DNA of 64,000 nucleotides, taken from the NCBI GenBank assembly GCA_965649825.1, contig OZ287695.1:682001-746000 (forward strand), in the 5' to 3' direction. Positions 9,853-49,743 of this stretch are shown piece after piece. The first letter of the stretch is position 1; each line of letters opens with the position of its first letter. The position numbers and the translations under genes were made by a program. Under the pieces are notes generated by a model. The model worked only from the letters and a program-made list of their open reading frames with translations, was not told the origin of the DNA and made no database searches. The stretch is from Penicillus capitatus. Lineage: Eukaryota > Plantae > Chlorophyta.

Positions 9853-9868
9853 TTACATCTTGCCCGGC

Positions 9869-12589: not shown

Positions 12590-14980
12590 ACCAACACACC
12601 GTGACATTCCCCTCTCGACATGTGTCTAGAAGTACTCTATACGCAGACGACAAGGAAATGCAAAAGGTTTTTGAAAGACGGCGAGCAACTGTATCGCCTT
12701 ACAACTGACCGAGAGGTTTTGAGTGCATGAGCGATGTATCAGCAGTCCTAAATCCAGAAAGCCAAGTCCAAGACAAAGACAAATGCCAGATGTCTATTTA
12801 TCCTATGCACAGGATGAAATTCAATTCTCTGCCTTCTATCACACTTTCCTTCTCACTAAACTCCAATCGTGGAACATGATAACAGAGTGAAAACATGTAG
12901 GAGGTGAATAATCAGATTTAGGAAGCCCCACACAGCAAAAGGACGTGTATCATTGCATCACGCCTTCCCAAATGACATCGTCTGCGATCCCTCGGCAAAT
13001 CAAGCAGAAGACCAGACGCATAAACAAAAGACAGAGTATCCACATTTGTGCGTCGAACACAGAGCAAATCCGCGATCAGTGCGTTGTCGCATATCGCAAA
13101 ACAGATGTCCTCTGGTCCTGCGCTGGAAGATGGTCAACTCAACATTTCTATTGGCATTCATGTCGTCCTTCGAGCAGAACCAGACGCAAACTACGAAGAC
13201 CGATGCGTCGAATGTGCATCGATCTTGAATTCAAAGGATAAGGGAGTACAGATTCCTTGGAAGTAAGAATCTGTTTTGTCAGTCGATAAGCTAGACGTAC
13301 GTATCTGTCGACAGATTCGCGTCTGAAAATGGAATGACCAATGAGAATGTCATCTCTCACGGTGCAGTTAAGCAGCCCTCTTGACGGAATTGTCTGAAAG
13401 CGAACGATGTGACTTTGACATCTACAGTAAACGTCCGAAATCGTGCGTGATTGTTCATTGCGTTTGTTCGCGATAATCAGCTACACACAAACGCTGAATG
13501 AGGTAGGTCATTAAAAGCCTGAATGGTTAGGTCTTTCGTCCTACGAAGATCCTTCTCATGCGACATCTCTAAGGAATAGGATCTGTGTCTCATCAACTTT
13601 TCAAGTAACAGCATATTACCGTCATATGCAACATGACGACAGAACTAAGTTAGTTAGATGAATAGATACACAACGACAGCTGTCAATCGTCATATCGTCG
13701 GAGGCGATGACGGTATGAAACACCGTTTCAGCATGAGAAAGAAAAGAGGAAGGAGGATAGCGATCCCCCACACAGGAACAACATATGGCCATGCACGTTC
13801 ACCTCCCCAGATAACAACAGCAGCAATCCATGGCAACCCAAGGACAAGACCACATGGATAGGCAGCGAAAGCCTTGTACTCGCTAAAGAAGAGTGCAAGT
13901 CCACCAATCCATCCGCCAATGGTAAGTAAAAACAGTCCGATTCCACCAGCGACAAATACACCAATCCAGAAATGGCACCACGCACCGTGCTTCGAGCATC
14001 GAACGAGTCCACGCTCCACACATCGCCACACTTCACAGAAACGATCTCCTCTGTCCATACACTGACAGACGGATGATTCGACTTCCTTGTCCGAAGTGAT
14101 GTCTCCTTTCCAGCGAAAGCAGAACTCTCCGCTCTCGTCCTCCTTCAAGCAGCGGTACTCCTCATATTCCGCTGCCCCGTCTGTGCCTGTCTCGACACAG
14201 CTCCACACCTCACAGTGCGTTTCGTTCGAGGATGGCTTGTCGCAGACGCACGTTGTCACTTCGCCGTGGATGGTGTCCTCGCAATCTCCATTGCAGTGGC
14301 TGTCGAATCCAATTTCTATTTGGCTGCACGTCCACATTGGACAGTACGTGCCGGTCGTCTCTCGGCAAAAACACCTTCCTTGTTCAGCTTCTCCGCCGCC
14401 CGCTTCTCGCGTCAACCACTTTGTGCAAAATGCCTCGTTGTCTTCGAGGCAGCGATAGAATTCGCGTTCTTCGTCTCTGACGTCCTTGTAGAGACCTCCT
14501 CGGTATCTCCCCGACTCGGTTCGGTAACCCGTCTGGCGTTTCAACCGCGGCCAGCTGGAAATGTCCGACTCGTATTCGAACTGCGCTCTGCCTTGATGTG
14601 ACAAGGCACTGTACATAACAATCAGCAGCAGCGCCTGCAAAGTTCGTCGACGTCGCATCATGGAAGAAAACAAGGCTTCGGTTCCTGACACTCAAAACTC
14701 GTTTCCGCTGACGAACACAGTTCCCAGTCAATTTATCTTCTGCTTCAGTGTGAGATTCCTACGAACCATAGAATCGTCATTGTACAGAGCTATTGTCAAC
14801 TTTTTGAAGAACGCTGCCTTGAAGCCGACGATGTGACCTCTGCCTCGTTGCATCATGGAATCGCCGAAGGGTCGAGTCGTCGTGTGCCATTCGCCTTCAC
14901 CTGTGCTCGAGGATCTCCACTTCCGCGTACGAGGCAGGCCGCGGCTACATCCGACGAATCCCCTCTGACGCCGAACGCGG
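12590..14980. repeat. Inverted duplication, arm A (~2.4 kb)
   Basis: Reverse complement aligns to ~38410-40800, covering the Cys-rich gene, near-identical downstream DNA and a remnant of another family member. Ends are approximate. Confidence 0.88.
13690..14658 (-). CDS. Cys/Trp-rich predicted membrane protein (signal peptide, five C-x6-10-C-x2-W modules, ~3 C-terminal hydrophobic segments), member 1
   Basis: Intronless ORF; ATG conserved with the 38734 paralog; hydrophobic N-terminus; motifs FCTKW, YCPMWTC, HCEVWSC, FCFRW, FCEVWRC; hydrophobic C-terminus. Confidence 0.85.
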   Translation of the reverse strand: MRRRRTLQALLLIVMYSALSHQGRAQFEYESDISSWPRLKRQTGYRTESGRYRGGLYKDVRDEEREFYRCLEDNEAFCTKWLTREAGGGEAEQGRCFCRETTGTYCPMWTCSQIEIGFDSHCNGDCEDTIHGEVTTCVCDKPSSNETHCEVWSCVETGTDGAAEYEEYRCLKEDESGEFCFRWKGDITSDKEVESSVCQCMDRGDRFCEVWRCVERGLVRCSKHGAWCHFWIGVFVAGGIGLFLLTIGGWIGGLALFFSEYKAFAAYPCGLVLGLPWIAAVVIWGGERAWPYVVPVWGIAILLPLFFLMLKRCFIPSSPPTI

Positions 14981-16540
14981 CATTCCGTCCTGTTCGCCGA
15001 AGGGACGGATGCCGCAGAGATGCCGGCACCCTTGTCTCTTCTACCCGTCTCACGATTCCTCGGGCGCCCGAATTGGGACTCGACTTCAGTTCGCCCCGTC
15101 TACGCCGTTGTTTTCTTTCGACACCATGCGGCAAAGATCGTTACTAGCCACTGTCCTCCATTTCGATGTGACTGCTCCTCCGATAAAACGAGCCAAATCC
15201 ATTGAACAATCTGGGTGATTTCGCGCAGGATAACGCACGGCAAATTGAGAAGGCAGTCAATTGGATTTCAAACAGTCACTGAGACCTGTATACTTCGCAA
15301 GGCAGAAATCGATATCCATGCACACAACTTCGGATTTGACGTTTCCGACTAGTCATTGACGTCGTCTAAGGAGTCTACATCGTTTTCAGGGATCTCGCAA
15401 TGAGTTTGACTGCAAGAGCTCAGAAATTGAAAGCATACTGTGTCCCGACTAAATAAAGTATCCAGTAGCTTGATGCATAAGGTCTTTTTACCATCTTGAG
15501 AATTTGGACAAAAATCCCATAATCGAGAACTTTCAGACATCTCAGAACGTACCGTGTGAATCACACCAGCAGACCTCATGCATACATCGGCAATGCGTTC
15601 TGATCCATTCTGTGTCGATCTAATGCAACAAACAGAATAGATGTGTACACGGCACCAGACACCGTTGTCTACCATGGACACCTCCATCCAGCCTCGCACA
15701 GTTCATTCTGCTGAGCAAACTTGCTGATTGGTTTCAACAAATCTGCTATCGCTCCAAGGAATTAGCGTTAAGGAAAACATTGACGAACTGCTTAGTCTCC
15801 CGAGGTACCATATATGCAGTTCTCTTCGATTTACTGCCATAGAACTTGACGTTCTCGATACCACAACGAGTCGAGTTGTGCAGATGTGGCCTTCTCCGAA
15901 TCTGCACTGCCCTCTACTTCCAATCGTCGCGAGTGAAGCAGGATGGCGAAACTTTGCGTTCGACTATTCGTCCGTCACGTCATGTACTTCATCCTTCATT
16001 TCATCGGCTTTTCTGCTTGACGCGACTCTGATGCCACACGGTTTTCTCGTGATTCGGGACTGGTTGTCGCGGTCACATCGTACGCAGCTTCTCGTAGCTG
16101 ACCAAGTTGTGGTCGAACAGCGTGTTAGTACGTTCGCGACGATATAAATACCAGTCGACCTTTCATTGTGACAACAGTCGTTACAAACACCGCCGCGACT
16201 CTGGCATAGAGGACGGATTGGCGGCAGAGCCTTCGTCTTTTGTTTCTTTGGTCAAGACGATTGGCGCGATTGTATCAACACAAGCGCGACGAGATCCTCC
16301 GTCGGCATTGCCCTACACCGAACCAATCGTTAAGGACATCCTCTTGCTTGCTTCGCCAAGTGAGGAACGATCTTAATGTCGCTGCGAACTGGTGTGTTTT
16401 CCAGGAGAAGCACCCAAGACACGTTTCCTGCTTGTTCGAAGACACGTAACAGTCTCAGTCCTTCGGCTGTTTTTTAATTGCGACAACGGTTAACAGCGTT
16501 TGGCGGTGCTTTTGTTTTCCATCCTGGTGTGCGAGAGAAA

Positions 16541-17230
16541 ATGAAGATCTTCGTCAGGAAGTTGACTGGGGGAACTCTCTTTCTCGAATGCGAGTCCAGC
16601 GACACCATTGACGATGTCAAAAACAAAATACAAGACGCGGCGGATACCCCGCACGAACAGCAGCGTCTTATCTTTGCCGGCAGACAGCTAGAAGATGGCA
16701 GAACGCTCAAGGACTATAACATTCAACAAGAGTCCACCCTCCATCTTGCTCTCAGATTGAGAGGTGGGCTTCCTTCCTTGGGATTTGAATTCGCCAGTAT
16801 GGAAAGATCTAAGTTCAATGGATTCTCAGAGAACGGGCCAGCTTACAGAGCCATTGATTATGGATTCAATCTGGAGGGTCGATGCACGAATGAGAAATGC
16901 AGAGCTTTTAAGCAATTGGCATGGAGCAGACTCGGATTCTCTCGCTCTGTTAACAAAGTCGATTCTGTTTTCGAGACAGCTGGTTTCAACATCGGCCCAT
17001 TGCTACACAATACGCCATGTCCCCTATGCAACGAGTCAATGGACCCTGATTCTATCGTGTCCTGTGGATTCTTTCAATGCCGGTATACCTATGAAGGCTA
17101 TCAGCAAGGCAAGAAGTCTGTCATCAAGGGAAAAGGGAAAACCATCGACGAAGATGGAATCGAGTACCATAATGGTATTATGGACAGCAAGCGTTGGACC
17201 TCGTTAATCATCGCAGTCGAACGTCTTTGA
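16541..17230 (+). CDS. Divergent ubiquitin fused via LRGG to a Cys-containing domain of unknown function
   Basis: [11 protein letters not shown]...LALRLRGG aligns 1:1 to 76-aa ubiquitin; the tail has [19 protein letters not shown] and CGFFQCRY. Confidence 0.9.
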
Positions 17231-19420: not shown

Positions 19421-19674
19421 TGAAGAACAGGGAGTTCTGTGTGGAATGTTTGAATCATAGCACGCGAACGGTCAGTTTACACGAGGCAACCCATCAGGCT
19501 CCTTCGTCGTCATCAGTCTCGTCATCCGTTTCAGCATACGTCATCACCACGGGAGAGAACACTCATTGTCACCTCACATGTTATAACAGACCCGTAATGA
19601 ATGTCTGCTAAACGGAGTAACGAATTGCTGCCATTATCTTATCGATAGAGTTGTATTAGATCATCAAGGACGGC

Positions 19675-20587
19675 ATGCGTCACGACTTCTTTGAGCAGAA
19701 CGCGTCACGTCAAGTCGCGGAGTTCAGAATGATCCTTTGTCTTCGCGTTTCGCCTTCTGTCATCGACCAGTTCCATTCGACGCTATTTCGGCACATTCTT
19801 CCTGCGTTTCTGCACCGCGGCAATCATCCTTCTGCGTCACGAGGTGAACCGAAACCAGTTTGCATAAGTGCTCCGCAGCCGGCCTGTCTTCCGTTCGACG
19901 GCACGTGCAGATGCAGTCGCGACGGAGACGTGACTCTCGCATTCGCCGACGGTTCCTTTCTGAAAACGCAGTCCAAGTTGCTGCAACTGGCGTCTCCCAC
20001 ATTCGGCGCAATGATGACAGGCAGCTATCACAGCAGAAGAATACACATGGAGAGAACGTCTAGAGAGACATGGGTCCGTATCCTGAACTTCCTGCATCCG
20101 TCTGCTCCGCCTTTTGAATGGGACATCAATCCGTACGAAGAAACGGATCTAATCGTAAAGACACGCACTCATCGACAGGACTGAGTCTTTTGGAATTTAG
20201 GTTGACATGTTGGAACAGGCGAGGAAATTCAAGTTCGGCGCCTTGCTGTCGTTTCTGGATGATGCGATTTCCGAAAAACTATCTCTTAGTCCGTCGTCCA
20301 CGTTCAGATTCCTCTTCCTGAGCAGCAGCACCATCCAGGAAAACCAAATAGATTTTTACCACGCGGCGATCCATTTTGAGGCCGAGCTGCCCAATGTTAA
20401 CAAGCAGATGCGTCTGCATATTGCCAGACACTTGCGGAAGCTTATCACGGATTCTAACGATATTCATAAGCAAGGAGAGAAACGCATTTTGACGCATCAT
20501 CGCAATAAAGAAATCTTCAAACATGTTATCGAGAATGGAAAACCCGAATTCTTTAAGAAACTGGTGGAAGATCTGATAGAGGACTGA
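19675..20587 (+). CDS. BTB/POZ-domain protein (5' exon structure uncertain)
   Basis: GDVTLAFADGSFLKTQSKLLQLASPTFGAMMTG...WVRILNFLHP; a phase-0 intron at 20155-20200 joins to VDMLEQARKFKFGALL. Confidence 0.75.
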
Positions 20588-21141
20588 TGGTGTCTGCTCG
20601 TTATGATGGGCAACTGAAGTCAGGCAGTAAATGATATGGCAGTCCACGGGTAGACAGTGAGATGCGATACGAACTGAGGTTGTAATAATGTTTTGTAAAG
20701 ACTTAACGATGGCTCAGCAAACGGATCCTGTTTCGTCGTTCGGATTCATCACTGATTGATTTGTGCATGAAGCTCTCTCCATTACTGTTTCTTTTAATTC
20801 AGTGTTGTTCAAAGAAGAAGAAAGCGCCGGTCGGCCCTCCAACGACCGTCTGTGTTCCTGTACGCTGTTGCGTCGCTCGCAAGCGACGACGATGAATGCG
20901 ATCAGACAATCGCTGAAAGATTCCGCGGTCCCGATCGAAGAATGTTGTAAGCGCTTTTCGCATTCGACATCATCCTTGCAAGAATGCACGTTGCTAAAGG
21001 TTCCGACTGACCTTTCAGAACTTGACTGTGTTGTGCTTTCTCGATTGAACTGGTGTTTGAATTCGCGGTAGACGTAATGGCAACGATAGTCAGAGCTCGC
21101 AATTCCTTTGCAGAGAGTGTTTGATGGAGGAAAAAACAACA

Positions 21142-21187: not shown

Positions 21188-21209
21188 AGGGCCAAAGAGA
21201 TGCAGAAGT

Positions 21210-23971
21210 TCAAACACGCAGGAGTTCAGTGAGCCCCTCTCGAGCTTCATCCGTGCACTTGGCGCCGCTGTAACTACAGATACGATCGAACGGAATCTTG
21301 TTAAGTGTGTTTGTGCTCTTTTTGTTTGCCCCGGCTGCTACGAGCATCTGCTCAACATAATTAAAGCGACGGTTAACGCAATTGGCGACTAACCACCTTA
21401 GCCGATTGCAGTTTGCCGTAAGAAGCTGCCACATGCAACGGAGTCCCGAAGCGTTCGCTTGAAATCATTGCTTCGATATCTGCACCGTGCTCAAGGAGGA
21501 TCTTCAAACGTCTCCATCAGCGCGGTAGTCTGACACAAGCGTAATCTTACTCTTTGAAGGTCGATGTGTTCACGAGCGGCAGTTTCGTGCAACGGAGTCC
21601 AATTGCTGTCGATGGAAGTGTTGATGGAAGCACCGGCTTCGATGAGGATCTGCATCCCGTCATCTTTTAAGTGACAAAAGAATCGAAGGCGCGATTCTGA
21701 CCCTCGCAATCTGCACAGATCCGCGGTTTGCAGCTTTGTGCAGCGGTGTGAAACCACGTTTGTCAAAAACATCAACATCAGCCCCTCCATTGACGAGAAT
21801 CTTGCTCCAATGGCTTTTAGACAAAAGGCCGAACAAATACAAGACGAACTAACCTTCGCAATCTGTATGAACCCCTTTGCAGCTGCATCAAGAAGTGGAG
21901 AGAAGCCATCACTATCCCTGAAAACATCGAGGTCTGCGCCATAGTCGACGAGATACTTTCGAAAACTTTTTAACACGAAATTCAACACAGGCGCTGAGTT
22001 TACCTTTACGATGTTGACATGGCCTTTGTAGGTTGCTATGTGAAGTGGTGTCCAGTTGCGATCGTCAAAGACATCGGTGTCTGCTCCGTGATCAAGGAGA
22101 ATCTGCTTGCACGACAGATACTATGAGACATGAAAGATGTGTCACCAACTTTTGCGACTCGAGCACTATTAGAGGTCGCGGCTTCATGCAGAGGCGTATA
22201 GCCGTTAGCGCGCGTTATGTCAATTCCAGCGTCATGCTTCATCAACACCTACAGAGTGCCGCCATCTACGAGGAGTACAAAGGAAGTGTCAGCAACCTTT
22301 GCGACTTGATCGCTGTTGAAGATCGCAGCTTCATGCAGAGGCGTATTGCCGTTGGCACTCGGGATGTCAATTCCCGCGTCGTATTTTATTAAAATCTACA
22401 GAGCACAGCCAATCACAGAGAATCGACGACTCGAGGTATGTCATTCTGCAAATGTGTGTACTCTGCACAGGAGTCGATCATACCTGAGCACACTGCGCAG
22501 CGTCAAGCGCAGCAGCTGCATGCAGCAGAGTCGAGCGATCCGATTTCGGAAGTGACTGTACGTCTTTCTGTCCGTAGGTGGCGTTGACATGGAGACCGGC
22601 CAAGATGAGGGCCTCAGCGTCAATGGAGTTGTCCGACCGCATGACGCGGAGCATCTCCTGCAAAAAGACTAACTGTCCACTATTCGACTTTAGTGCAGTT
22701 TACTTCGATCATGGCCGATTCCGAGAACAAGGCATAGTGCTTCCGCCTCTCCATCAGCTTAATCTGGTGCGTCGCAACGCAGCTGGAACGCTGCGTACAT
22801 GTGTTGAAGACAAAGAGTGAATCTCGGATCTCACATCTTGATGACAATTGATGGTCCTTTCGATCCAATCGAGGAAATAGTCGACCCTCGTGTAGATGGC
22901 AGGCTCATCTCCGGAGCAAGCGTCGGCGTCGTCCCCCGCGTAGCCGAATGACGTGACGCCGACGATCATGTCCAGCTGCGGCTTCCCATCATCCATGCTT
23001 CCATATGGAGCGTCCATCAGCAGCAGCGGACCTCCTGAATCGCCTGCCACGCAACGCGGAACGTTGCTTGTAAGAGGGTGCAGCAGGGGTCAGTCCAGAT
23101 GACCTTTGCAGGTGTCCTCGTGCAGTCCTCCACCGCAGATCCAACTCGTTGGATCCACGCCTTGGGGCTGTGTTTTGCATTTATCTTGTCCGACAACGGC
23201 AAGATGACCCGCCACCTGCAGCTTCTTCGCGACGACGCCGTCTTTAGTCAGTCCCCATCCCGTGGCGCCAAGATATTGACCCTTCTCTAGGGGAACGTAG
23301 CCCGTGCCCAATCGCGGCAGCGTCACGTCCGCGTCTCTGTCGAGCTTCAGTACAGCCACGTCGTGTCCGCGTCCGACGTCGCCTGTCCACTTGGGGTGAA
23401 TGTATCCTGCGATCGCATCAAAGACCTGCAACAACGTGGCAGGCCTTGCTTCTGTCCGCGAGTGATTCGCAGCTACCTGGTGTTCTTCCGCCTTCTTGCG
23501 GTCGTGTATTCCGCAGTAGACGATGGGCGACAGACCGACGGTGGGGCGAACGTCGGGGTCCACGCAGTGAGCCGCCGTCAGGACCCAGTCGCGTCTGAAC
23601 AGCGTCGCCCCGCACATGTGGCGGCGAGTACCACGTTCTCTCAGGCTGCATGCGTAGGGAAATCTTCCAGGCGGCGCCGTCTTTCCTCTCTGTCAACCGT
23701 TGGCCTTGGAGTTCTGCGACAAAAACGTTCGAACGCTTACCACTATCTTTCCGAAGATGGTTGTGTTCGACTCGGAGCTCAAGTCCGCGTTGTTCAAGGC
23801 TTCACAGAAGTGACCGTCGTATGAATGCAAGTGTTTTAGGTTTTCCGCACCTTGAACGTCGACGGATGCCCATGCCGTCAGCAACAGCGACTGCAGCGTC
23901 AAGTTCGTCAGCGCGATGATCCATTTCTTCGAGCTGTGTGCTTGCGCGGAAGACCGACGAAGCGCGAACAT
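21210..23971 (-). CDS. S1 serine protease-ankyrin repeat fusion, member A (trypsin-type, D189)
   Basis: Spliced by eye in frame: hydrophobic leader, IV|RG N-terminus, TAAHC, HDVAVL, EDTCKG|DSGGP, linker, ~8 ankyrin repeats, C-cap PFDRICSYSGAKC...LLRV*. Confidence 0.82.
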
Positions 23972-33284: not shown

Positions 33285-36200
33285 CTACGTGCGGAATATT
33301 CCGTTGTTTCCATTCTGAATGTCTGCTCCGTCGACTGGTGTGACCATGAGCTGCGTCATTGACTGTTCTCTCGACGAGACGTTCCCCAACGTCATCTTTT
33401 CGTTTGACATGCAACAGGAATCTTTGATCTTCCTCAACGAAATCGCCAGACCCGCTGCAAAGAAGGAGGCGATCCACACAATCGGCCAGTGGTCTTCCAA
33501 GAAGAGAACGATGAGCGTAATCGCCATCTGCCAGATCTGCATTGGGGCACCAAACTTGACGAAATCGATGATCGTGTATCCGCCCGAAGCAAACACCATC
33601 AGGTTCGTCTGATACCCGAAGGGAGACATAAAGGCAGAGGACGCGCCCAGCATCAGCAACGCCGCCATGCGGTTCAGAGAGATGTCGTTCTCTGCGAAAC
33701 AGCACATCGGAACCGAACCGAGTGGAGACGTAGAAGTTACGTTTGGCGACGTTCATGGCAACGGGAAACATCAGCGCCGCCACTGCGTTGTTCGCCACGA
33801 GATTGGACAGCAACATCGTGGCGAAGTAGATGGCGAACATCACGAAGAAATTTCCTCCGATGGCTTTCCCTGCCAGACAGCGCCGCCGTTCGTTTCAGCC
33901 AGACTCAAGAATGGCACCTGCGGAGACCAGGCTGTCTGCGATGAGACTGGCAACGTCGCTGTTCTCGATGCCAGTGCTGACGCCAAACGCAGCAGCAACG
34001 GTGATGATGACATCCCACTTGACGGAGGCCCTGGCCTGCTCGCCCGTCAGGCACTGCGCCATCAGCATGATGGCAGACGTGATCAAAGCGGCGGTGATCA
34101 ACTCCACAAACGTGCGATCGAACGCCACGCCCACCAGCTGAGACAAGACCATCGCCGCCAGCGCCAGCATCGCCACCAAGGCGCGATCGAATCTGAAAAC
34201 AAAGATGCTGGACGGGGTCATCGCAGTGCACGGCACATCGCACCTTGGAGTGTGGCTATTGGCCACTTCCGAGACGAGGGCAAAATTCCGGTTGTTTCTG
34301 TTTTCGATAACGAACTGGGCACCCGTATCGAGAAGCAGAACATCGCCTCCTCGGAGGACGATGTCTCCAATCTTCTCCTTCAGTCGATGACCTTGGCGAT
34401 GGACACCTGCGTCGACGCCATCTCCTCCGCTCTCTCAGAGGCAGGCAACTCACCGATGATTGCTGCGTGGAATCGCGTGCGGAATCGACTTTCTCTCACT
34501 GTCTTTCCGGCCTGGTGACAACAGCACGGGAGCACAGGTTGAAAGAGGTGACGGTCCTGACCAGAACGGAGATCGGGGAGATGACGGCCTCGACGAGCCT
34601 TCTCTCTTGATGCGAGTGATTCAGCTTCTTCACTTGGTTTCCGTGCGGAACGAGACCGGCGATCTTTCGAAGGGAGGCGACACTCTCGAGCACTCCAGAG
34701 AACCAGAGAACATCTCCTGCCTCCAGAATCTCCGTCGGCGATACGGCCGGAATCCGATGACCCGTTCGGCGTTCGATCTCCACCAAGTACAGCTGATGCA
34801 GTCCGCGCAGACCTGCCTTCTCAATGGACTTGTTCACGAGCTACGTGGCACGTCATCAGCAGATGCCGGTGCTGGATGGGCACTTGACTGGGCCGCGGGG
34901 TTCGACTTCCATAGCCACCATGAACTCCCTCTCGGATTTGGCATCGGACTTCCTAATGTTAACCAGATTCGCCGTCACATCGTCTGAGTGTTCGTCGAAG
35001 GACTGAGAAAGGCAAGCAGTTTAGCCGAGCATTGAAGGGCGGACGGGTGGCTCACGGGGGAGCAATCGAGGACGAGGACGTCTTTGGCTTGCAAGATGAT
35101 TTTCCCCAGCGTCCCTGGGACCTTCTTTCCGTTTCTGGAGACAGCCAGAATAGCCTGAAAACAGAGGATCAGTGTCCAGAAATGCAAGCGGGTGCTTCTC
35201 AACAGCTTGGAATCTGGAACGAAAACCGACGTCTTTGACACTGTGTCCGACAACTGGAGCATCCTCTGCGATCTAATCAACTCTCGAAACTGAAGGAAAC
35301 TGTCTTGCGATGCGTTTCAGAGGACCTCTGCTTGTAACAGACGGTTAAGAGGGGCAACACTGGGACGGTCGAGCACGGGTGGCGTCTGTAGACTGGTGGA
35401 CGGGGGAATCCATTGCTGACGGTGGTATCGCTCAATCTCCTCGTTGAAGGCATTCGGAGAATTCAGCGACGGAGATCGTCGAACGGGAGAACCCAACAAG
35501 GCCGGCATCAATCTTGCACAGCACGGCATCAGTCCATGAGCTCAAGACACTCAGTGTCAGGACATACTGTTCGGTTTCGTCTGTAACGGGTCGCAGCGCA
35601 AAGGTGTCGACAAGGTTCTGCAGTCCGTCCATGACACCTGGCACCACATTATCGCCTCCGCGGCGCACGGAATGGAAGGCACCTGTGAAGTAGAGGATGT
35701 CCTGCGAAGCAATGACGAACTCTGGACCCACGGCACTGATGATGTGCTGTCCACGTCTGCCGGACAGTACGGTGCCTTAACTCGAGGCATGCTTCGAGCT
35801 CATACCTGACGGATGCGAGAAAGAGTCCATCTAGACCGCGCAGACCAGCTTCGTCGACCGTGCAGCCAACTGCACGCGAATGATCCGTGACCTCCAGTCC
35901 AACGAGGAAGGAACTCTGGGCATCTAGAAGAAGAGAAAGCTGGAAGGAGTGCATTGCAGCGTCTGCTCAACATTGCACTTGGTTTTGAGCGAGGCCAGGG
36001 AGAAGCAACGGAGAAAAGAGATACATGTAGATGAGTCCACCGACGGCGACGGGGACGCCGAACTTGCCGATGTCGAAGAAGCTCTGCTTGGGTATCTGCT
36101 CACCCTCTTCGGCACTTGCCGCCATGTCGTCAATCAGACCTAAAAAGCGCACAAACAAACGCGTTTCGTCTCGCACCCGTCGCCTGTGCACCTGCCACGA

Positions 36201-36831
36201 CCAGATTGGTCGACGTGCCGATCAAAGTGCAGGTTCCGCCGAGCATCGATGCGAAACTCAGTGGGATGTACAGCTGCAGGGAAGGCATCTGAACAGGGTT
36301 CGTCATCGAAATGGTGTGCCTACCTGTCCTGCAGGGAGATGGGATCTCTGGCACCACACCTTGACGATGGGAATCATGATGGCCACCACTGGTGTGTTGT
36401 TCATGAAGGCGGAGAGGATGGTCACGGGAAGCATCATGCGCATCATAGCCGACCCCGTATTCGTCGGATTCCCTAAGACGACTTGGAAGAGAGCGTCCAG
36501 ACATCCCGTTTCTGAGATGCCCATCGCCACAACGAAAAGCACTGGTGGAAAACGTCCATTGCCGACGCTTCGTCAATCGCCGGCTCACCTGCGACAGTCA
36601 GAGGTGCTTCGTTGGAGAATCCCGCCAGTCCCTCATCCACGCTGATGATGCGCGTCACCATGAGCACAGAGAGAACACCTATCGGCAAGAACGTTATCCA
36701 TCTGCTTGAAGAAGAAGGGACGGCTGACCTAAGAAAACGAAATCTGCGCCCGCCCAGTCTTTGAAGAGAATGACAATCGCCACGACGATGCATAGAATAG
36801 CAACGGCAGAATCCAAACCAAACTCAGCCAT
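33285..36831 (-). CDS. SLC13/CitMHS-family anion transporter with TrkA-C domains (SAC1/SLT-like sulfate transporter type), multi-exon
   Basis: Motifs LAGFSNEAPLTV, SAFMNNTPVVAIMIP, PLSFASMLGGTCTLIGTSTNLVV, TrkA-C segments (GLRGL..LYLVEIER), VANNAVAALMFP, SSAFMSPFGYQTNLMV and DFVKFGAP. Confidence 0.9.
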
Positions 36832-38733
36832 GACAGCCAAGATAACCCGGAGACAAATAGAAGGTTAAATCTCAACTGTCGTACATAAGGAATTCTTAAA
36901 CAACGCGTCCGTCACATGTCCGACTCCGTGCCCGCGGCCTCGAGGAGAGGGAAGCAAAAGGTTTGCCATCTTGAACCAGCAGAGTCACATCAGCATGGAC
37001 ATAGAGAGACTGTGTCCGTTGTGCACTGAAGTATTCAGGGTACTAGAACTCGATCTGCTTGTCTTTATCTGCCAGTTGGCCACCATGCGTGCAGTGATTC
37101 CTGCCACTTCAGATCGTTGCACTTTGATCGGCAACTCTTGTGCCTTTTGCTGTTCTTCTGAAAACACCGCTTGCTGATGCGATGGCGATTCAGTTGACAC
37201 AGGATTTGCTCATGGTGAGAACGGCAGATGAATTCATCATGGGTATCTGTACGGAAGCAGCGCAGTTTTATATCTCCCGTTTTCATCGAGGTTCAATACA
37301 GAAGTGTCATCGTTTTGTCACAACAACAGATACAGCATCCAAAAGCCAAAGCGTCGAGAGCGTTGAATGAAATCCAAAGCGCGGTTCCGATAAACATAAC
37401 GAACGCTGTGGCTGGATCAGATGTGACCGTGATCTGACAACACCTTTTCATTTAAAAACAAAGTCTGAAGATTGAGTGACATGCATCATCGGCGAGGATC
37501 GTGGCAAAAACACGTGTTCCTCGTTGTCCACTGCCATCATGTCAATTAGCAAAAAAGTGTATCCGGGAAGAAACTTCCGTTTTCCCTTATCTAGTTTTTA
37601 TGAATTGCGAGTAATAAACAAGACGGACGAAAGGAGTACTCTTGCAGCCAAGGCTGGTTAACAGATGACTCCAATAAACGCCAAGAGATTCTGCCGGAGT
37701 TCATCCGTCCGCCTTTTGCAGTCAGAAACACACGTAGACATGAAGCCCTCGCGATCACTGTTCGGTGTCATCAGCTACAACGCGCAAGAATCCGTGAGAG
37801 CCTTGAGGATAAGGAGAGGAATCATCAGATGGAGTTCGCTGGGTGCAGGGACGTCGTCAGTTTTTATGCGTGCCAGCAAGTGTGGCAAGGAGATGAAAGG
37901 TATGGCTGACTCGTCGTGGTCGTGCCGCGTCCATCGTCTGCCCGACACGGACATAAGCTCCGCACGAGCGCCAGCTCTTGTCTATCTTGATATTTCGCTC
38001 AAGCGTGATGCAGACAAACCACATAACGAGGAAGAAAAAACACGTTGTTGATTGTTGGGCAGCGTTCGCAAAAACAGACTTCTTCGACGGGGCAGGCGGC
38101 ACAACTTTGCCCGACCTTGGTGCAGACAGACTGTGCGAATGGCGTGAAAGGATTACCCGCGTCTACTACTCCTGGACTGTCCACTGATACAATGACAGTG
38201 CAGAAGCAATCCCACCAAGAGACTCGATTAGCCGCTTACATTAACGCCTCGGTTGGAAATCCGACGGCTAGTCGAACCTCTATCGTCTATTTGTCACCGC
38301 TTGCACACGTAGATGCACGTACGTTTAGCAAGCGCTACGCCCATGCCTGCAGCGTGCAACTAGAAGGAGTAACATTGCTATCGAAAAGAGACCGGTCATG
38401 TCATTAAGCGTCCGCTTTCGATGGCAGAGGAGATTCGCCGGAGGTAGCCGCGGCCTGCCTCGTACACGGACGTGGAGATCCTCGTGCACAGGCGAAGGCG
38501 AAGGGAACACGACGACTCGACCCTTCAGCGATTTCATGATGCAACGAGGCAGAGGTCACATCGTCGGCTTCAAGGCAGCGTTCTTCAAAAAGTTGACAAT
38601 GGCTCTGTACAATGACGATTCTATGGTTCGTAAGAATCTCACACTGAAGCAGAAGATAAATTGACATGGAACTGTGTTCGTCAGCGGAAACGAGCTTTGA
38701 GTGTCAGGAACCGAAGCCTTGTTTTCTTTCACG

Positions 38734-39708
38734 ATGCAACGTCGACGTGCTTTGCAGGCGCTGCTGCTGATTGTTATGTACAGTGCCTTGTCACATCAAG
38801 GCAGAGCGCAGTTCGAATACGAGTCAGACATTTCCAGCTGGCCGCGGTTGAAACGACAGACGGGATACCGAACCGAGTCGGGGAGATACCGAGGGGGTCT
38901 CTACGAGAGCGCCAGAGACGAAGAACGCGAATTCTATCGCTGCCTCCAAGACAACAAGGCATTTTGCACAGAGTGGTCGACGCGAGAAGCGGGCGGCGGA
39001 GAAGTCGAACATGGACGTTGTCTCTGCCGAGAGAAGACCGGCACGTACTGTCCAATGTGGACGTGCAGTCAAATAGAAATTGGATTCGGCAGCCACTGCG
39101 ATGGAGATTGCGCGGATACCGTCCACGGTGAAGCGACAACGTGCGTCTGCGACAAGGCCTCTATGAACAAAAGGCACTGTGAAGAATGGAGCTGTGTCGA
39201 GACAGGCACAGACGGAGTAGTGGAAAATGAGGAGTACCGCTGCTTGAAGGAGGACGAGAGCGGCGAGTTCTGCTTCCGCTGGAAAGGAGACATCACTTCG
39301 GACAAGGAAGTCGAATCATCCGTCTGTCAGTGTACGGAGAGAAAAGATCGTTACTGCGAAGTGTGGGAGTGTGTTGAGCGTGGACTCGTTCGATGTTCGA
39401 AGCATGGTGCGTGGTGCCATTTCTGGATTGGTGTTTTTGTCGCTGGGGGAATCGGACTGTTTTTCCTTACCGTCGGCGGAATGATTGCTGGAGGCGCACT
39501 CTTCTTTGGCGGAGACAAGACTTCTTCTGTCTGCGGCTATCTGTGTGGTCTTTTGTTTGGATTGCCTTGGATTGCTGGTGTTGTTATCTGGGGAGGTGAA
39601 CGTGCATGGCCATATGTTGTTCCGGTTTGGGGGATCGCTATCTTCCTTCCTCTTTTCTTTCTCGTGCTGAAACGGTGTTTCATACCGTCATCGCCTCCGA
39701 CGATATGA
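38734..39708 (+). CDS. Cys/Trp-rich membrane protein, member 2
   Basis: Close paralog of 13690-14658 with all module cysteines retained. Confidence 0.87.
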   Translation: MQRRRALQALLLIVMYSALSHQGRAQFEYESDISSWPRLKRQTGYRTESGRYRGGLYESARDEEREFYRCLQDNKAFCTEWSTREAGGGEVEHGRCLCREKTGTYCPMWTCSQIEIGFGSHCDGDCADTVHGEATTCVCDKASMNKRHCEEWSCVETGTDGVVENEEYRCLKEDESGEFCFRWKGDITSDKEVESSVCQCTERKDRYCEVWECVERGLVRCSKHGAWCHFWIGVFVAGGIGLFFLTVGGMIAGGALFFGGDKTSSVCGYLCGLLFGLPWIAGVVIWGGERAWPYVVPVWGIAIFLPLFFLVLKRCFIPSSPPTI

Positions 39709-40379
39709 CGATTGACAGCTGTCGTTGTGCGTTTATTCGTCTAACTTTAGTTCTGTCGTCATGTTGCATATGACGGTAATATGCTGCTACTTGAAAAGCC
39801 AGGACACAGATCCAATTTCTTAGAGATGTCGCATGAGAAGGATCTTCGTAGGACGAAAGACCTAACATTCAGTCTTTTAATGACCTACCTCATTCAGCGT
39901 TTGTGTGTAGCTGATTATCGCGAACAAACGCAATGAACAATCACGTACGATTTCGGACGTTTACTGTAGATGTCAAAGTCACATCGTTCGCTTTCAGACA
40001 ATTCCGTCAAGAGGGCTGCTTAACTGCACCGTGAGAGATGACATTCTCATTGGTCATTCCATTTTCAGACGCGAATCTGTCGACAGATACGTACGTCTAG
40101 CTTATCGACTGACAAAACAGATTCTTACTTCCAAGGAATCTGTACTCCCTTATCCTTTGAATTCAAGATCGATGCACATTCGACGCATCGGTCTTCGTAT
40201 TTTGCGTCTGGTTCTGCTCGAAGGACGACATGATTTCGAACAGAGATGTTGAATTGACGATCTTCCAGCGCCAGGACCAGAGGACATCTGTTTTACGATA
40301 TGCGACCACACAATGATCGCGGATTTACTCTGTGTTCGACGCACAAATGTGGATGCTCTGTCTATTGTTTATGTGTCTG

Positions 40380-40500
40380 GTCTTCATGTTGGTTTGCCGA
40401 GGAATCGCAAGCGTTGTCATTTGGGAAGGCGTTGATACAATGATATACGCCCCTCCTGTTGTGTTGGGGTCTTCAGCGTCGATTCTCTGCCTTCTCTCAC
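40380..40500 (+). pseudogene. Remnant 3' (TM) fragment of a Cys/Trp-rich family gene
   Basis: IASVVIWEGVDTMIY matches VASVVVIWEGVDAMIY of the 43091 copy; an inverted counterpart lies at ~12920-13020. Confidence 0.55.
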
Positions 40501-41024
40501 GTTCTTCTCTCTGTTATCATGTTCTGTCCAAGATTGGAGTTTACTAAGAAAGAAAGTGTGACGGAAGGCAGAGAATGGAATTTCGTCCCTCAAATAGGAG
40601 AAATAGAAATCTGACGCGCGTCTTTGTCTTCGATTTGGCTTTCTGAATTTAGGACTGATGCATTGCTAATGTGCTCCAGACCAGTTCGTCAGTTTAGAGG
40701 CTAAGCAGTTACTCGTCCTTTTGAACCATATGCATTTCCTTGTCGTCTGTATATAGAGTACTTCTGGACACGTGTCGAGAGGGGAATGTCGCGGTGTGCT
40801 CGTTCGCTAGTAGAGGCACACTGTAGTGCATCATCTGTCACATCGCGAAGTTTTCTAGAGTTTACATCATCCTTGAAAGCTGCATCGTCATGCATAGCAA
40901 TCGAATATTCGCATTTAAAGAATTGCTCTCATTTTGTGTTCGGGTATAAAATGATGCTCACATTGCAACAGCAGAAGTCGACATATCTCTTGTCGCTGAG
41001 GGTTGGGATTGAGGTTTCGTCAAG

Positions 41025-42230
41025 ATGCTTCTCAAACGCGTTCTGGTGTTTATTGTACTCTCAATGCTCTTTAATGTCTCTTCTTGCCGGTTTCATCGTG
41101 GCACCCGACGCAGTTTTGGTAAGGAAATCCCAAAAAACCTGACTCCGAAGACACCGAAGATCTCACTCCCTCCTGCTGTTACTGGAATCCCTAAAGGCCT
41201 GACACCGAAGATCTCACTCCCTCCTGTTGCCACGGGGGGAGTTCCTGTCGACCTGACGTCGAAGACGCCGAAGACCTCACGCACTTCTTCTATTACGGCA
41301 GTCCCTGGAGGTCTGATTCTAACGAAATCAACAACCACTGTTTCTAGCGCGCGAAAGTCCAAACGCCGTTCCAAGACATCCGTGGACCGTATTGTGGATC
41401 CAGCGAAGAAGACGTCGAAGAAAACGAAAACAGACCAGCCAAGAAACGGAGAACGAAAAGACATAAAGACAGAATGCAACCTTGTCGAGAAAGGTTACGC
41501 GATCTACAGCTGTGTCAGCGAAACCGAGATGTATTGCAATGGATGGTCGACGAAACGCGTGAAGCTGGAACGATGTCATTGCGCGAAGTAGAGGAGGCCC
41601 CGTCTCACCGTGTGCTCAACAAAGTGGTGTCAGGAAGATCAGTGCAACCTCGACAGTGATGTCTGTCACTCGAAGGACATCCCGATCAAACCGACAAATT
41701 GCAGATGCGAGAATCCGTCCTCTGATGGGACGTATTGCGAGCAATGGAGCTGCATCGAGTCCATCACGGGAAGGGACTATCGCTGCTCAGAGAACCACGA
41801 CAGCGGCCTCTTTTGTTTTGAGTGGGAAGGCAACAGCACTGTGAATGATTCGAAGAAATCTCCTGGCTGTTTTTGTCTCGGCGTCGAAGGAGATTCTTTC
41901 TGCAAAGAGTGGTGGTGCGGCGATGCCGGAATCAAAATCGACTGCCGAGAAGGCAACGGCAAAGGCAAACGCAGGAACAAGAAATCCGATTAAGATGCCT
42001 ACAGAGGGGGACTGTGCTTTTCTTTTTTTCGTCGTAAAAGACATCTTAACGTTGCTTGAAAGATTCTGGGAGTATGGTATTACAAGATGGCTTACAGCTC
42101 CAAGGGTGTGGGTTCATTGCCGTTTGGTGTGGGGCTCTTGGGTGTGACCGCATTTCGTTCTAACATGAGCCGTCATCTGTTGCAATTACCTGCAGTGTTC
42201 TGACGCCTCAGTTGCGTTACTGGAGAAGGA
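41025..42230 (+). pseudogene. Cys/Trp-rich family member with Pro/Thr/Lys-rich N-terminal extension, disrupted
   Basis: Signal peptide MLLKRVLVFIVLSMLFNVSSC resembles member 3. In-frame TAG at 41589-41591, modules continue to TAA at 41993, then frameshifted TM remnants. Confidence 0.7.
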
Positions 42231-43090: not shown

Positions 43091-43870
43091 GTCATCCGAA
43101 CGCCAGAACCAAAGAAACGCGCCTCAGATGACTCAACCAGCGTCCCCCCACCGCATGGACCTCACGAAAACAAGACAATAGTCCCATCGCCGGGCGACAG
43201 AGAGGACGTCGGTCTCTACTGCTCAAGCTGGACTTGCAGTCTGGCGGAAATAGGGGTCCGCAGATCCACGGATGACGATGACGATGATGAATTAATCGTC
43301 CATGGTGAAGTAACAAGATGTCTTTGCAGCAAAACATCACCGAACGCGAACTACTGCGACGAATGGCACTGCACAGAAACGGACACGGACGGGGCTCCAG
43401 AAGACGAGCACTACCGCTGTCTGGAAGAGGACGAGAGCGGCGAGTTCTGCTTCCTCTGGAAAGGAGACTTCACTTCGAGTACAGAGATTGATTCATCCGT
43501 CTGTCAGTGCGATGAGAGGAGAGGGCGTTACTGCGAATCGTGGCAGTGCGTGGAGCATGGACGCGCTCGTTCTTCCAAGCATCACCATGGATGGCGCAAT
43601 TTCTGGGTTGGCAGAGGCATTGGACTCGTGTTTCTTCTCGCTGGATGCATATTCTGCTGTATCGGCTTTCTTACTGGTCGTCCACACTCGATCAGACAAG
43701 ATAAGCTGCGCACATGTGTGTTAGGTCTTTTTCGTGAGCTGCCATTGGTCGCTAGTGTTGTTGTCATCTGGGAAGGTGTAGATGCAATGATTTACGTCCT
43801 TCCATTGTGGGGATTCGTGATACTGCTCCCCTGTCTGGCCTTTGTGCCTTATCTCCACATCGCTCTCTGA
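43091..43870 (+). pseudogene. Cys/Trp-rich family member, 5'-truncated
   Basis: Open frame from 43091 (after TGA, no ATG) encodes YCSSWTC, YCDEWHC, EHYRCLEEDESGEFCFLWKGD, YCESWQC and TM segments. An unseen upstream exon cannot be excluded. Confidence 0.7.
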
Positions 43871-44444
43871 CGTAGACCGCGTTTCGCCATTAATTTTAAT
43901 CCGGTCAAGTGAAGAGGAGAAAACAGATAAACCACCACTGTGCGTCAGACTGAGGAAATAGTCTACCTGGCATGGTGTCGATTTAGCTTTGGTTCTCTGC
44001 TTAAGAATGCTGTTAACTCAGGTTTATGCGTCCGAAAATTTTCAGTCACTGCAAATGCAGCTCAATTACTGATTTGAGTTTAGAAACATCTACGCTTGAC
44101 AGTTCAATTATTGGTTTTCGTTTAGGAACATCCACGCCTCATTCGATTCTTGTCCAAATAAACGATTCATGAATTCGTTCTAACTGGTAGATAGAGTGTA
44201 CGATACTCTTGTTGATTTGACCCTTCCAAACAAGTCTGTTGTTATACTGTAAATGTTACATCTCCAAGTTTACGCGACTCGTAGCTTCTCGAAAAAAATG
44301 GTCTTGACGTGTCCAGCTTCCTCCGTCCGCTTCGGGGAAACTGTTCTCGCACTTTTTTGGCTATAAAGCCGGCGATAGTGTTTGCGTACAAACTGACTTA
44401 TTTCTTTTTTCTCGGCGAAGGTTGACGTTCCTGTTTTTGTTTTG

Positions 44445-45446
44445 ATGCTTAACCGACGTGTTCTAACGATTCTTATACTCTCTAAGCTCTTCGGTGTCGC
44501 GTCTTGTCAGAGGTCGGTTGTCTTCACCAGGAGGACTCTTTCCAACAGAAAGGCGCAGTACAAACCAAGCCGGCATTCACTAGGAAACGATGATTCGCCA
44601 TTGCTTGAAGAGGACAGTTCGAGTCCGTGTCGGTCAGTGTCCAAAACAGAACACCGTTGCCTCGAAAAGAACAAAACGTTGTGCACGGAATGGTCGACAG
44701 GAGAATTAGAGCGAGGACGTTGCTTCTGTTGCCACCAAAGCGGTCTCTATTGCTCTCTCTGGATTTGCCCTCATAAGGGAATCGAACCTAGCACCACTCA
44801 CCATAACCGTGATCGCTGCATCGAGATATCTGAAAACACCACCAGATGCAGCTGTTTCAATGCATCCTCGAAGAAGGACTATTGCGAAGAGTGGTACTGT
44901 ACCGAGTCCGCCGTAGACGGAAGTCTGCAATACGAGTATTACAGCTGCCAGGAAGCAAACAAGAGCAGCGGCATTTGTCTCCACTGGAAAGAAGACATTC
45001 GTGAGAATGGAGATGGCGAATCGTCCGACTGTCACTGCAAAAGGAAAGGAGATGGCTTCTGCAAACGGTGGAACTGCACCAGACGCGCCCGGTGTCCTGA
45101 CGACGAAGAGCACCGTCACTCGATGGTCTGGTTGATAGCAGGAGGCGGTGGACTTCTGTTCTTCGCTGCGGGTTGGATCCTGGCGTACGACGAAGAATTC
45201 CTCAAACATTGGTACCCCAAAGGCTGCTTGGCGCTCGGACTGTTGTGGTTCATCGCTGTTTTCCGTTATGGGGCTACCCAACTGTGGCCGTTTTTCGTCG
45301 TAGGATGGGTGCTCATCATGTTTATTCCCTACCTCGTTCTGAAGACTCGGTCTTGGTTGCTGAAAAAGAACGCGACAAACCAGGAGTCATCAGACGGAGG
45401 ACAAACGCCTCAGAATGAAACAGAAAGCGATTGCACCAACGATTGA
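44445..45446 (+). CDS. Cys/Trp-rich membrane protein, member 3
   Basis: Intact ORF with signal peptide, modules LCTEW, YCSLWIC, YCEEWYC, ICLHW, FCKRWNC and three hydrophobic segments. Confidence 0.85.
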   Translation: MLNRRVLTILILSKLFGVASCQRSVVFTRRTLSNRKAQYKPSRHSLGNDDSPLLEEDSSSPCRSVSKTEHRCLEKNKTLCTEWSTGELERGRCFCCHQSGLYCSLWICPHKGIEPSTTHHNRDRCIEISENTTRCSCFNASSKKDYCEEWYCTESAVDGSLQYEYYSCQEANKSSGICLHWKEDIRENGDGESSDCHCKRKGDGFCKRWNCTRRARCPDDEEHRHSMVWLIAGGGGLLFFAAGWILAYDEEFLKHWYPKGCLALGLLWFIAVFRYGATQLWPFFVVGWVLIMFIPYLVLKTRSWLLKKNATNQESSDGGQTPQNETESDCTND

Positions 45447-48400: not shown

Positions 48401-48786
48401 GACAGGAGAACTAACGCCCTGAAGTATTTGAGTCGGCCGAATAGCGTCCACAGCAACTACCGACACCATGTTGCCTCCATTGTACTCGCTCTAGATGGGT
48501 CATGTCCCACGCCTCTGGGCGATACGATCGGACAATCGGCAATTGTGTGAACGACGATCTACGATACACCTCGAATCTCTATTCTGTGTGCATTCATTTC
48601 TTGAGAGTGCTTTAAGGCGAGGGGGAATGCCAACGGTTAATCCTCTGTGTTCCATCCAGCTCTCTGCCAACCATACAAGCGTCTCTAAGCTGTTCAGAAC
48701 AAATCAGGCTCATTGCGACGGCTCCGCGGGCCGATGCGAGTGTTCTTGCGATCCTATCAGACACACATCTGTTCACACATCCAGAT

Positions 48787-49743
48787 TCAAATTGTGCTCA
48801 CTCTCGTCGGACGGCAGACAGCGATCCACAGAGGCAGCAGCAGAGCAAAGAACCATAGAGCTCCGACGATGGGCAGCGCACGAACTCCGCCCCAAATGAC
48901 CACTCCGATCATCATGAAAAGCGCTGGAATGCTGAGAGGCAGAGCCAAGTGTGGTTCTTCCATCAGCAGACTGAAAGTCGAGGCAGCGATGATGATGAAC
49001 ACAGCGACGCCGCCGCCACCCAAAACAGCAACCCAGTAATTGCACCACCAACCGGAATGCCCCTCGCAACGAACCATTCCTCTCATCTCACAGGACCAAT
49101 CATCACAGAGTGTCTCGTTGGTCGACTGGCATCGGCAGACAACGGACTTGATCTTCTTTTCCGACGAGATCTGACCTTTCCACCACTCGCAGTAATCCTC
49201 TCTGTTGGTACTGTCGCATTGGAAATGCTGCTCTTCGAAGTCGCCGTCATAGTCGAGCTTCACACAGAACCATTCCAAACAGTACTTTGCATTTTCGGTC
49301 TTGCTACACCAGCAGCGTCTCTTTTCCATCCGCGAATCTTCATCACAGGTGCTCTCGGCATCTGCCGAGCAGTTAGATGCCAAACTGTGATTGCATGACC
49401 AGTTGTCAATGGCGTTCGGTTCGGTCCAGCACGCGATGGACTCTTCTCCTCTGTCCGTGCTGTTTCCCATACCCGTCCAGTTGGTACAGCGGTTCGCCGC
49501 GCTGGCATGGCAAATGTAATGTTCTTGGCCTTCGATTTCGGCTTGGGTGTATATGCCGCCGCGGTACTCACCGGAATTTTTATAGTAGCCTGCCCTGCGT
49601 TTCAGCATCGGCACGGAATCCACTTCCGTATCTCCCTTTTCTGTATCGGTTTCGGAATTGAGCTCCGTATCCACGTGTTCCATACAGGCGACGAAGACCC
49701 ACGGCACCAATGCCAAGAGAGGTAGCACAAGGAGCATGCGCAT
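48787..49743 (-). CDS. Cys/Trp-rich membrane protein, member 4
   Basis: Intact 318-aa ORF; LKRRAGYYKNSGEYRGGIY matches LKRQTGYRTESGRYRGGLY of members 1/2; same modules and TM tail. Confidence 0.87.
   Translation of the reverse strand: MRMLLVLPLLALVPWVFVACMEHVDTELNSETDTEKGDTEVDSVPMLKRRAGYYKNSGEYRGGIYTQAEIEGQEHYICHASAANRCTNWTGMGNSTDRGEESIACWTEPNAIDNWSCNHSLASNCSADAESTCDEDSRMEKRRCWCSKTENAKYCLEWFCVKLDYDGDFEEQHFQCDSTNREDYCEWWKGQISSEKKIKSVVCRCQSTNETLCDDWSCEMRGMVRCEGHSGWWCNYWVAVLGGGGVAVFIIIAASTFSLLMEEPHLALPLSIPALFMMIGVVIWGGVRALPIVGALWFFALLLPLWIAVCRPTRVSTI

Follow-up and report, generated by a model that had tools for sequence, protein, structure and literature searches.

A 64,000-nucleotide stretch of Penicillus capitatus DNA (assembly GCA_965649825.1, contig OZ287695.1, positions 682,001 to 746,000 of the forward strand; referred to as the window) contains a cluster of genes for cysteine- and tryptophan-rich membrane proteins, which we characterized computationally as a follow-up to an earlier prediction. 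Within 36 kb, the cluster comprises four intact genes (members 1 to 4), two decaying copies and one scrap (Table 1). As claimed in the original prediction, the open reading frames (ORFs) of all four genes are uninterrupted. Based on the observation that relatives begin at an internal methionine, members 1 and 2 probably start at ATG 14661 and ATG 38734, respectively. These two proteins are 85% identical, members 3 and 4 share 31-33% identity with member 1, and tblastn E-values between members range from 1e-12 to 1e-44, far beyond chance. Every member contains 20-23 Cys and 12-15 Trp residues. The ectodomain is acidic in members 1, 2 and 4 with an isoelectric point of 4.7-4.9, and five and six N-x-S/T sites are present in the ectodomains of member 3 and member 4, respectively. 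Member 3 additionally carries a longer, acidic and Ser/Thr-rich tail. A signal peptide had been proposed for all members; a hydrophobic leader is indeed present, but it was judged from its n-region and h-region alone and its cleavage is putative. Overall, it is well supported that the four ORFs are real, related genes for disulfide-rich membrane proteins.

Table 1. Family members, decayed copies and duplicated blocks, numbered from the first nucleotide of the window.
Feature	Position (strand)	Extent	State or content	Basis
Member 1	ORF 13690-14691 (-), opening at GTG 14691; likely start ATG 14661, giving 13690..14661	323 aa	intact	ORF listing
Member 1, leader	14587-14661	aa 1-25		
Member 1, N-terminal [KR]xAGY..Y.GG motif	14488-14553	aa 37-58		
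Member 1, five predicted beta-hairpin modules	14002-14478	aa 62-220		
Member 1, three predicted membrane helices	13717-13971	aa 231-315		
Member 1, predicted cytosolic tail		~8 residues		
Member 2	ORF 38701-39708 (+), opening at GTG; likely start ATG 38734, giving 38734..39708	324 aa	intact	ORF listing
Member 3 (P0002)	ORF 44442-45446 (+); gene 44445..45446	333 aa	intact	ORF listing
Member 4 (P0155)	48787..49743 (-)	318 aa	intact	ORF listing
Degenerate copy	41025..41993 (+)		leader, Pro/Thr/Lys-rich insert, modules 1-5; no in-frame membrane tail	tblastn
5'-truncated copy	43091..43870 (+)	259-codon open frame	end of module 2 through module 5, membrane tail	tblastn
Short relic	13048..13170 (-)		marginal match (34% identity over 41 aa, E 6e-4) to module 5 and the juxtamembrane region	tblastn
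Duplicated block with member 1	12586..14980		89.5% identical, inverted, to 38412-40807	self-comparison
Duplicated block with member 2	38412..40807		partner of 12586-14980	self-comparison

The four members were checked using regular expressions for their modules and hydropathy for their membrane segments. Two module types were distinguished, type a ([YH]-x-C-x6-10-C-x2-W) and type b (C-x-C-x6-10-C-x2-W-x-C), and the predicted series of five modules in the order a-b-b-a-b is exact in members 1-3. Member 4 had been described as deviating in modules 2 and 3. This is correct for module 2, where the outer Cys pair alone is kept and C2 and C3 are absent, whereas module 3 is a canonical type b module (CWCSKTENAKYCLEWFC) and the second deviant is in fact module 4, in which Phe replaces Tyr/His. 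The pattern expected of the new family, which is itself defined by an alignment profile, comprises C2...C3-x2-W in five modules combined with C1/C4 in modules 2, 3 and 5, and it was found throughout with the exception of module 2 of member 4. One module spans ~30 residues with the consensus E-x-E-x-[Y/C1]-x-C2-loop-[YF]-C3-x2-W-x-[C4]-x-E, and an alignment of the modules within member 1 reads E-x-E-x-[Y/C1]-x-C2, a 7-9-residue loop and [FYH]-C3-x2-W-x-[C4]. Across an alignment of 77 relatives, each module retains both its E-x-E ladder and its Trp. Cys losses from type b modules in the same relatives affected C1 and C4 jointly 21 times and C2 and C3 jointly once, with odd patterns seen ~5 times, while a type a module is equivalent to a type b module minus its C1/C4 pair. 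The joint losses and the type a form support nested disulfides, with C2-C3 predicted to close the loop (inner) and, in type b modules, C1-C4 predicted to connect the strands (outer). Further, conserved Glu, Cys and Trp positions alternate in their spacing, which points to a possible common face of the sheet for these residues.

Downstream of the leader, the motif LKR-x2-GY-x4-G-x-YRGG[LI]Y, which had been reported for three members, was found by regular expression in members 1, 2 and 4. In the alignment, the family-wide form of this region is [KR]-x-A-G-[YH]-x5-G-x-Y-x-G-G-x-P. Its G...Y-x-GG core is kept in 42 of the 77 relatives and the dibasic pair in just 15, and the AGY..Y.GG motif is wholly missing from member 3 and its orthologue P0005. 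In an AlphaFold2 model (described below), the KR pair falls within a confident short helix and the motif has a predicted local distance difference test (pLDDT) score above 95. As KR is the form taken in one subfamily by a motif that is family-wide and confidently folded, the dibasic processing site suggested earlier is unsupported, and a conserved structural or functional cap is the better reading of this region than a propeptide cleavage site.

Hydropathy analysis identified three C-terminal hydrophobic segments in members 1-3, with the last two fused into one long stretch in member 4. Together with the three helices seen in the AlphaFold2 model, this is in good agreement with the ~3 segments predicted originally. 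A model based on 10 close sequences (pLDDT 57) was discarded, and the model used here was built on the 77 diverse relatives and reached a pLDDT of 93.3 and a predicted template modelling score (pTM) of 0.83. It starts with a leader helix and a structured region at residues 31-60 (pLDDT 96-98), followed by five predicted hairpins (strands 62-74/79-88, 91-99/109-118, 130-143/150-159, 164-174/181-190 and 193-204/209-220). The predicted helices (231-259, 264-286 with a kink at Leu-Pro, and 288-315) begin ~10 residues past the last strand and are connected by very short turns. The membrane domain is conserved in sequence, including a Gly-rich helix 1, a near-invariant GG turn between helices 2 and 3 (G287 is retained in at least 90% of the 77 sequences) and conserved Trp and Pro residues, which suggests a role beyond anchoring. 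No conserved polar or charged residues were found in the helices of the 77-sequence alignment, which argues against a pore. Basic residues follow helices 1 and 3, at the membrane face predicted to be cytosolic, and a cleaved leader combined with an N-out/C-in topology would fit the hydropathy profile, the positive-inside rule and the model.

A tblastn search of the window with the four proteins uncovered the two decayed copies and the relic, which had been overlooked in the original prediction. In the degenerate copy, module 2 is interrupted by an in-frame TAG (41589-41591), and this copy is probably a pseudogene. A 37-nt intron bridging this stop was considered as well and was rejected, given that it would shift the frame and be shorter than nearby introns. 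The 5'-truncated copy is ~50% identical to member 1. It is devoid of a start, leader, N-terminal motif and module 1, two of its juxtamembrane Cys residues are gone and an Arg is present in its first membrane helix; this copy, too, is probably a pseudogene.

Ratios of nonsynonymous to synonymous substitution rates (dN/dS) were calculated by the Nei-Gojobori method. They amounted to 0.45 for member 1 compared with member 2 (dS 0.18), 0.21 for member 1 and its orthologue P0001 from a related genome (dS 0.13), and 0.29 for member 1 and P0003 from a third genome (dS 0.53). Values for the ectodomain (0.10-0.36) were below those for the membrane part (0.33-0.60). The intact members are under purifying selection and the genes are real. 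The view that the ORFs arose by chance or represent dead genes with no function could draw on the two clearly decayed copies of the cluster, but is barely credible in light of four intact ORFs of 318-333 codons with dN/dS well under 1 and intact orthologues in other genomes. Such orthologues, together with copies of other subtypes, are located on long contigs of two other assemblies, and the cluster is common to three related genomes with dS of 0.13-0.57. One related contig is collinear with the window yet rearranged and contains fragments of several subtypes. In the sister genome (contig L002), the cluster is more compact and rearranged, and next to an orthologue of member 1 it contains copies of three further subtypes (member-4, member-3 and 43091-type) that are incomplete or broken in frame (L002 positions 13402-13982, 19424-19931 and 20459-20980).

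Members 1 and 2 reside in an inverted 2.4 kb duplicate which spans ~320 bp 5' and 1.1 kb 3' of the coding region. No poly(A) was found at the boundary of this duplicate, where homology stops without an A-run, and no dinoflagellate spliced-leader relics were detected upstream with up to 3 mismatches allowed. The hallmarks of a processed retrogene, namely a 3' poly(A) and the absence of shared flanks beyond the transcript, were thus not observed. Searches for viral relatives returned none in IMG/VR contigs using pattern-based scans of limited sensitivity, and none among BFVD viral structures, where the best Foldseek match had an E-value of 3e-3 and a TM-score of 0.16. The GC content at third codon positions (GC3) is 0.56-0.64 for the four genes and 0.46-0.67 for neighboring exons. 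The genes had been highlighted as intronless within an intron-dense genome. The absence of introns from all four ORFs was confirmed, while intron density was only sampled through two trypsin-like neighbors with GT-AG introns of 60 and 48 nt between CKG and DSGGP. An unrelated ubiquitin-domain neighbor at 16478-17230 (+) is likewise encoded by a single ORF, and intronlessness is therefore neither unique to the family nor diagnostic of its origin.

These results bear on the suggestion that the genes came from a virus or another organism, or are retrocopies, with intronlessness as the remaining trace. Such an origin would account for uninterrupted ORFs beside intron-bearing genes and for the patchy spread of the family over distant eukaryote groups, and brown algal genomes are rich in viral insertions (bioRxiv 10.1101/2024.02.19.579948). 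However, retroposition is argued against by the duplication of both flanks along with the gene, by a boundary free of poly(A) and by the lack of spliced-leader relics, and horizontal origin by GC3 values inside the range of the neighbors, by the occurrence of the cluster in related genomes and by the empty viral searches. With an unrelated intronless gene next door, we consider a foreign or retrocopy origin to be very improbable, and both proposals of the original prediction are unsupported. Instead, the dN/dS values (0.2-0.45), a codon composition resembling that of the host, the duplication of flanks along with the genes and a matching cluster in two related genomes indicate resident genes spreading by local duplication. 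The data point towards a cluster that grew through local DNA-level duplication with birth-and-death turnover and not through retroposition or recent transfer.

The breadth of the family was determined in an exhaustive HMMER search with a 10-sequence profile, with clusters at 50% identity serving as representatives. We obtained 191 clusters at E-values of 1e-3 or lower, 98 at 1e-10 or lower and 37 at 1e-30 or lower. A word-indexed search recovered seven clusters only, and the 77-sequence alignment used as a query returned 6 proteins and added nothing. Of the 154 representatives listed, the majority retain C-x-C...C-x2-W-x-C modules and, after them, two or three hydrophobic segments. Names were looked up for 30 representatives. 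Among these were proteins from the brown algae Undaria pinnatifida (EP00904_P003204), Ectocarpus fasciculatus (CAM9858132.1 and CAM9719478.1) and Discosporangium mesarthrocarpum (CAM9835215.1), from the dinoflagellate Amphidinium massartii (MMETSP transcript, EP00403_P026091) and from the choanoflagellate Salpingoeca kvevrii (transcriptome, EP00050_P012059), with metagenome or Logan contigs making up the remainder. The S. kvevrii homologue is 32% identical over 271 aa (E 1e-30) and has the identical module order, and the Amphidinium homologue, with long inserts between its modules, was aligned with an hhalign probability of 97.5%; both sequences could conceivably be contaminants of those transcriptomes. 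The named homologues, which are annotated merely as unnamed or hypothetical, agree with the window proteins in how their modules are ordered and in the Cys/Trp/Glu pattern, and they have both the AGY..Y.GG motif and a three-helix tail. They are, however, only ~25-35% identical, and some differ by long inter-module inserts, extra Cys pairs in the N-terminal motif or longer tails. As distant members originate from transcriptomes, some family members are transcribed. The 1171-bp Logan contig with P0006 has no poly(A) and is thus no evidence of transcription.

The family is therefore widespread yet patchy and occurs mostly in marine protists. The original notion of a novel family holds in the sense that it is uncharacterized and unmatched, but the profile search located relatives beyond the source lineage and the family is not lineage-private, given 191 clusters including brown algae, a dinoflagellate and a choanoflagellate. 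One distant member (890-1753 of contig L004, Logan SRR28428061) is found in a gene-dense stretch beside a 2090-aa single-ORF ABC transporter, and the family accordingly also occurs in an intron-poor eukaryote. P0077 and one other distant relative end in a SHOCT domain (best E 6.6e-7), the only recognizable added domain in the family; for P0077, the sole listed score is under Pfam's own cut-off.

The surroundings of the cluster were annotated as well. An apparently intact Ty3/gypsy-type retrotransposon with long terminal repeats (LTRs) occupies 4583-9853. Its ORF (4977-9407) encodes a 1476-aa gag-pol protein with gag, protease, reverse transcriptase, RNase H and integrase domains, and its LTRs (4583-4923 and 9513-9853, 341 bp each) are 100% identical, indicating recent insertion. 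A 92%-identical copy of pol is present on another ENA contig, and the closest named relatives, from animals and plants, are ~32% identical. The retrotransposon splits the left copy of a direct segmental duplication, in which 1-4382 and 10682-12239 correspond to 57193-61554 and 62444-64000 with 91% and 84% identity. Judging from the left copy, another family member may be located immediately outside the window on its right. The minus strand carries three genes for trypsin-like serine proteases (~23030-23617, ~28446-28984 and ~52347-53225), the first two of which contain TAAHC and GDSGGP and carry the 60 and 48 nt introns mentioned above at the same position. Ankyrin-repeat ORFs at 21491-21988 and 50596-50985 adjoin the first and third of these genes, and trypsin and ankyrin neighbors also flank family members in two related genomes. 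In a related genome, Tab2-like and chlorophyllase-like ORFs adjoin an orthologue, which hints at a protist that possesses a plastid. The ORF at 16478-17230 (+) encodes one ubiquitin domain followed by a ~150-aa Cys-containing extension with no Pfam match, and its L002 counterpart is a 390-aa ORF with two ubiquitin matches. A BTB-domain exon (19675-20184, +) and exons of a CitMHS/SLC13-type anion transporter (33229-36588, -) are situated between family members, the latter being broken over several frames, consistent with introns. Tandem repeats at 10153-10488 (45 bp x 7.5, 100% match, several frames open) and 27938-28135 (27 bp x 7.3, 98%) account for long repetitive "ORFs" at these positions. 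Rfam and tRNA scans of the window returned no matches.

Based on these findings, our tentative reading, held with slightly less than even confidence, is that the four genes are resident functional paralogues of an undescribed, widespread protist family and encode surface binding proteins with N-out/C-in topology. The leader would send the protein into the secretory pathway, where the disulfide-stapled, glycosylatable and acidic ectodomain of ten hairpin strands would come to face outward. This ectodomain would act as a rigid module for extracellular binding, with a cation, a basic component or a matrix component as its possible ligand. Its last strand would continue straight into a compact glycine-rich bundle of three helices, with the basic residues after helices 1 and 3 fixing the topology, and the conserved bundle may allow the protein to self-associate or to couple with a partner. 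Since the predicted cytosolic parts comprise few residues and no signaling domain of their own, any signal would have to reach a partner, or further copies of the protein, by way of the bundle. Surface location, binding and oligomerization or partner coupling are features that we infer.

Several points weigh against this reading. Location, ligand and expression of the window's genes are putative, and leader cleavage and topology are predictions drawn from the hydropathy profile, the model and the positive-inside rule. An arms-race adhesin is disfavored by the low dN/dS of the ectodomain, a value that does not point to any ligand. Given helices free of conserved polar residues, a membrane role beyond anchoring is a guess from sequence conservation. 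Lastly, the disulfide pairing and the exposed face should be regarded as predicted. A different location would be an internal membrane, such as that of a secretory vesicle, vacuole, extrusome or scale- or wall-forming compartment, with the ectodomain in the lumen where it might, for example, capture cations or cargo while a cell covering is being built. The leader, the disulfides and the acidic E-x-E ladder suit a lumen as well as the surface, the very short cytosolic tail has no recognizable motif, and the family occurs in marine protists with elaborate secretory structures. The present data fit lumen and surface equally. The taxa concerned (brown algae, an athecate dinoflagellate and a choanoflagellate) have no cell covering in common, and we consider a luminal role unlikely.

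A family that matches nothing in Pfam or the Protein Data Bank (PDB) and is present in brown algae, a dinoflagellate and an animal relative represents a clean target for structural and cell biology. Its extracellular repeat module is new and has disulfides that can be predicted, and its three-helix anchor is unusual and itself conserved. The patchy distribution could go back to an ancient origin followed by losses or to transfer from one marine protist to another. Should the ectodomain prove to bind a cation, a partner cell or a matrix component, the family could bear on cell-surface recognition in brown algae, for which few receptors are known; if it binds none of these, the family would be one of many orphan protist families.

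The relation to known proteins was investigated at the level of sequence and structure. At gathering score, no Pfam-A match was obtained for the window proteins, ten long relatives and the 77 aligned members, with no family recurring, and no cysteine-rich Pfam domain matched the window proteins or their relatives. A profile search of PDB sequences at an E-value threshold of 1e-3 was empty as well (best E 0.5, membrane segments only), and Foldseek returned no PDB structure with a TM-score of at least 0.5 (best 0.24). This confirms the original statement that no known domain can be recognized. Literature searches and a comparative genomics paper on brown algae (bioRxiv 10.1101/2024.02.19.579948) yielded no mention of the family.

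The top 50 Foldseek matches in the PDB were all pentameric ligand-gated ion channels (pLGICs), aligned near end-to-end with E-values down to 2.6e-4 and probabilities up to 0.89. Like GABA-A, glycine, nicotinic, GluCl and ELIC channels, the modeled window proteins combine an N-terminal helix, ten outer strands and membrane helices joined directly. An oligomeric channel or gated-pore subunit, whose ectodomain senses a ligand and hands the change straight on to the helices, which in an assembly of several subunits line a pore as in pLGICs, would be in line with these matches, with the shared linker-free layout and with a sequence-conserved, glycine-rich membrane domain. However, TM-scores of only 0.14-0.24 and root-mean-square deviations of 16-24 A mean that the folds do not superimpose. 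pLGICs possess a beta sandwich with one Cys-loop and four helices (M1-M4), whereas the window proteins are predicted to form a hairpin meander with disulfides inside the hairpins and three helices. Further, neither sequence nor profile similarity exists, including to Pfam Neur_chan and PDB sequences, and conserved polar or charged residues are missing from the helices. Because few other PDB chains join a beta ectodomain to a helical bundle, the ranking of pLGICs is expected from the order of secondary structure alone. As far as the model can tell, the resemblance is one of element order and not of fold, and a channel function appears quite unlikely. A bolder proposal would be a new class of self-assembling membrane receptor-channel, in which an acidic hairpin ectodomain of novel fold gates or organizes the glycine-rich bundle, inherited from early eukaryotes or passed among stramenopiles, dinoflagellates and choanoflagellates; we regard this as a long shot.

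Among cysteine-rich repeat families, that of the EsV-1-7 proteins has expanded in brown algae and related lineages (bioRxiv 10.1101/2024.02.19.579948). The EsV-1-7 motif is putatively zinc-finger-like, whereas the window proteins carry a leader and membrane helices and appear built for the secretory pathway. Their general architecture can also be compared with that of tandem-module receptors. TNF-receptor cysteine-rich domains, EGF-like repeats, thrombospondin type-1 repeats and Sushi/CCP domains are short modules with one or two disulfides that form a rigid extracellular binding stalk, and some of them contain a conserved Trp, as do the window proteins. No Pfam model of these domains matches, and the module described here differs in being a predicted single beta-hairpin with nested C1-C4/C2-C3 disulfides and an E-x-E ladder. 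Tandem-module receptors are held by a single-helix anchor, in contrast to the conserved three-helix bundle of the window proteins. The cluster encodes a new family with an apparently new fold inside the familiar class of membrane proteins with disulfide-rich repeat ectodomains.

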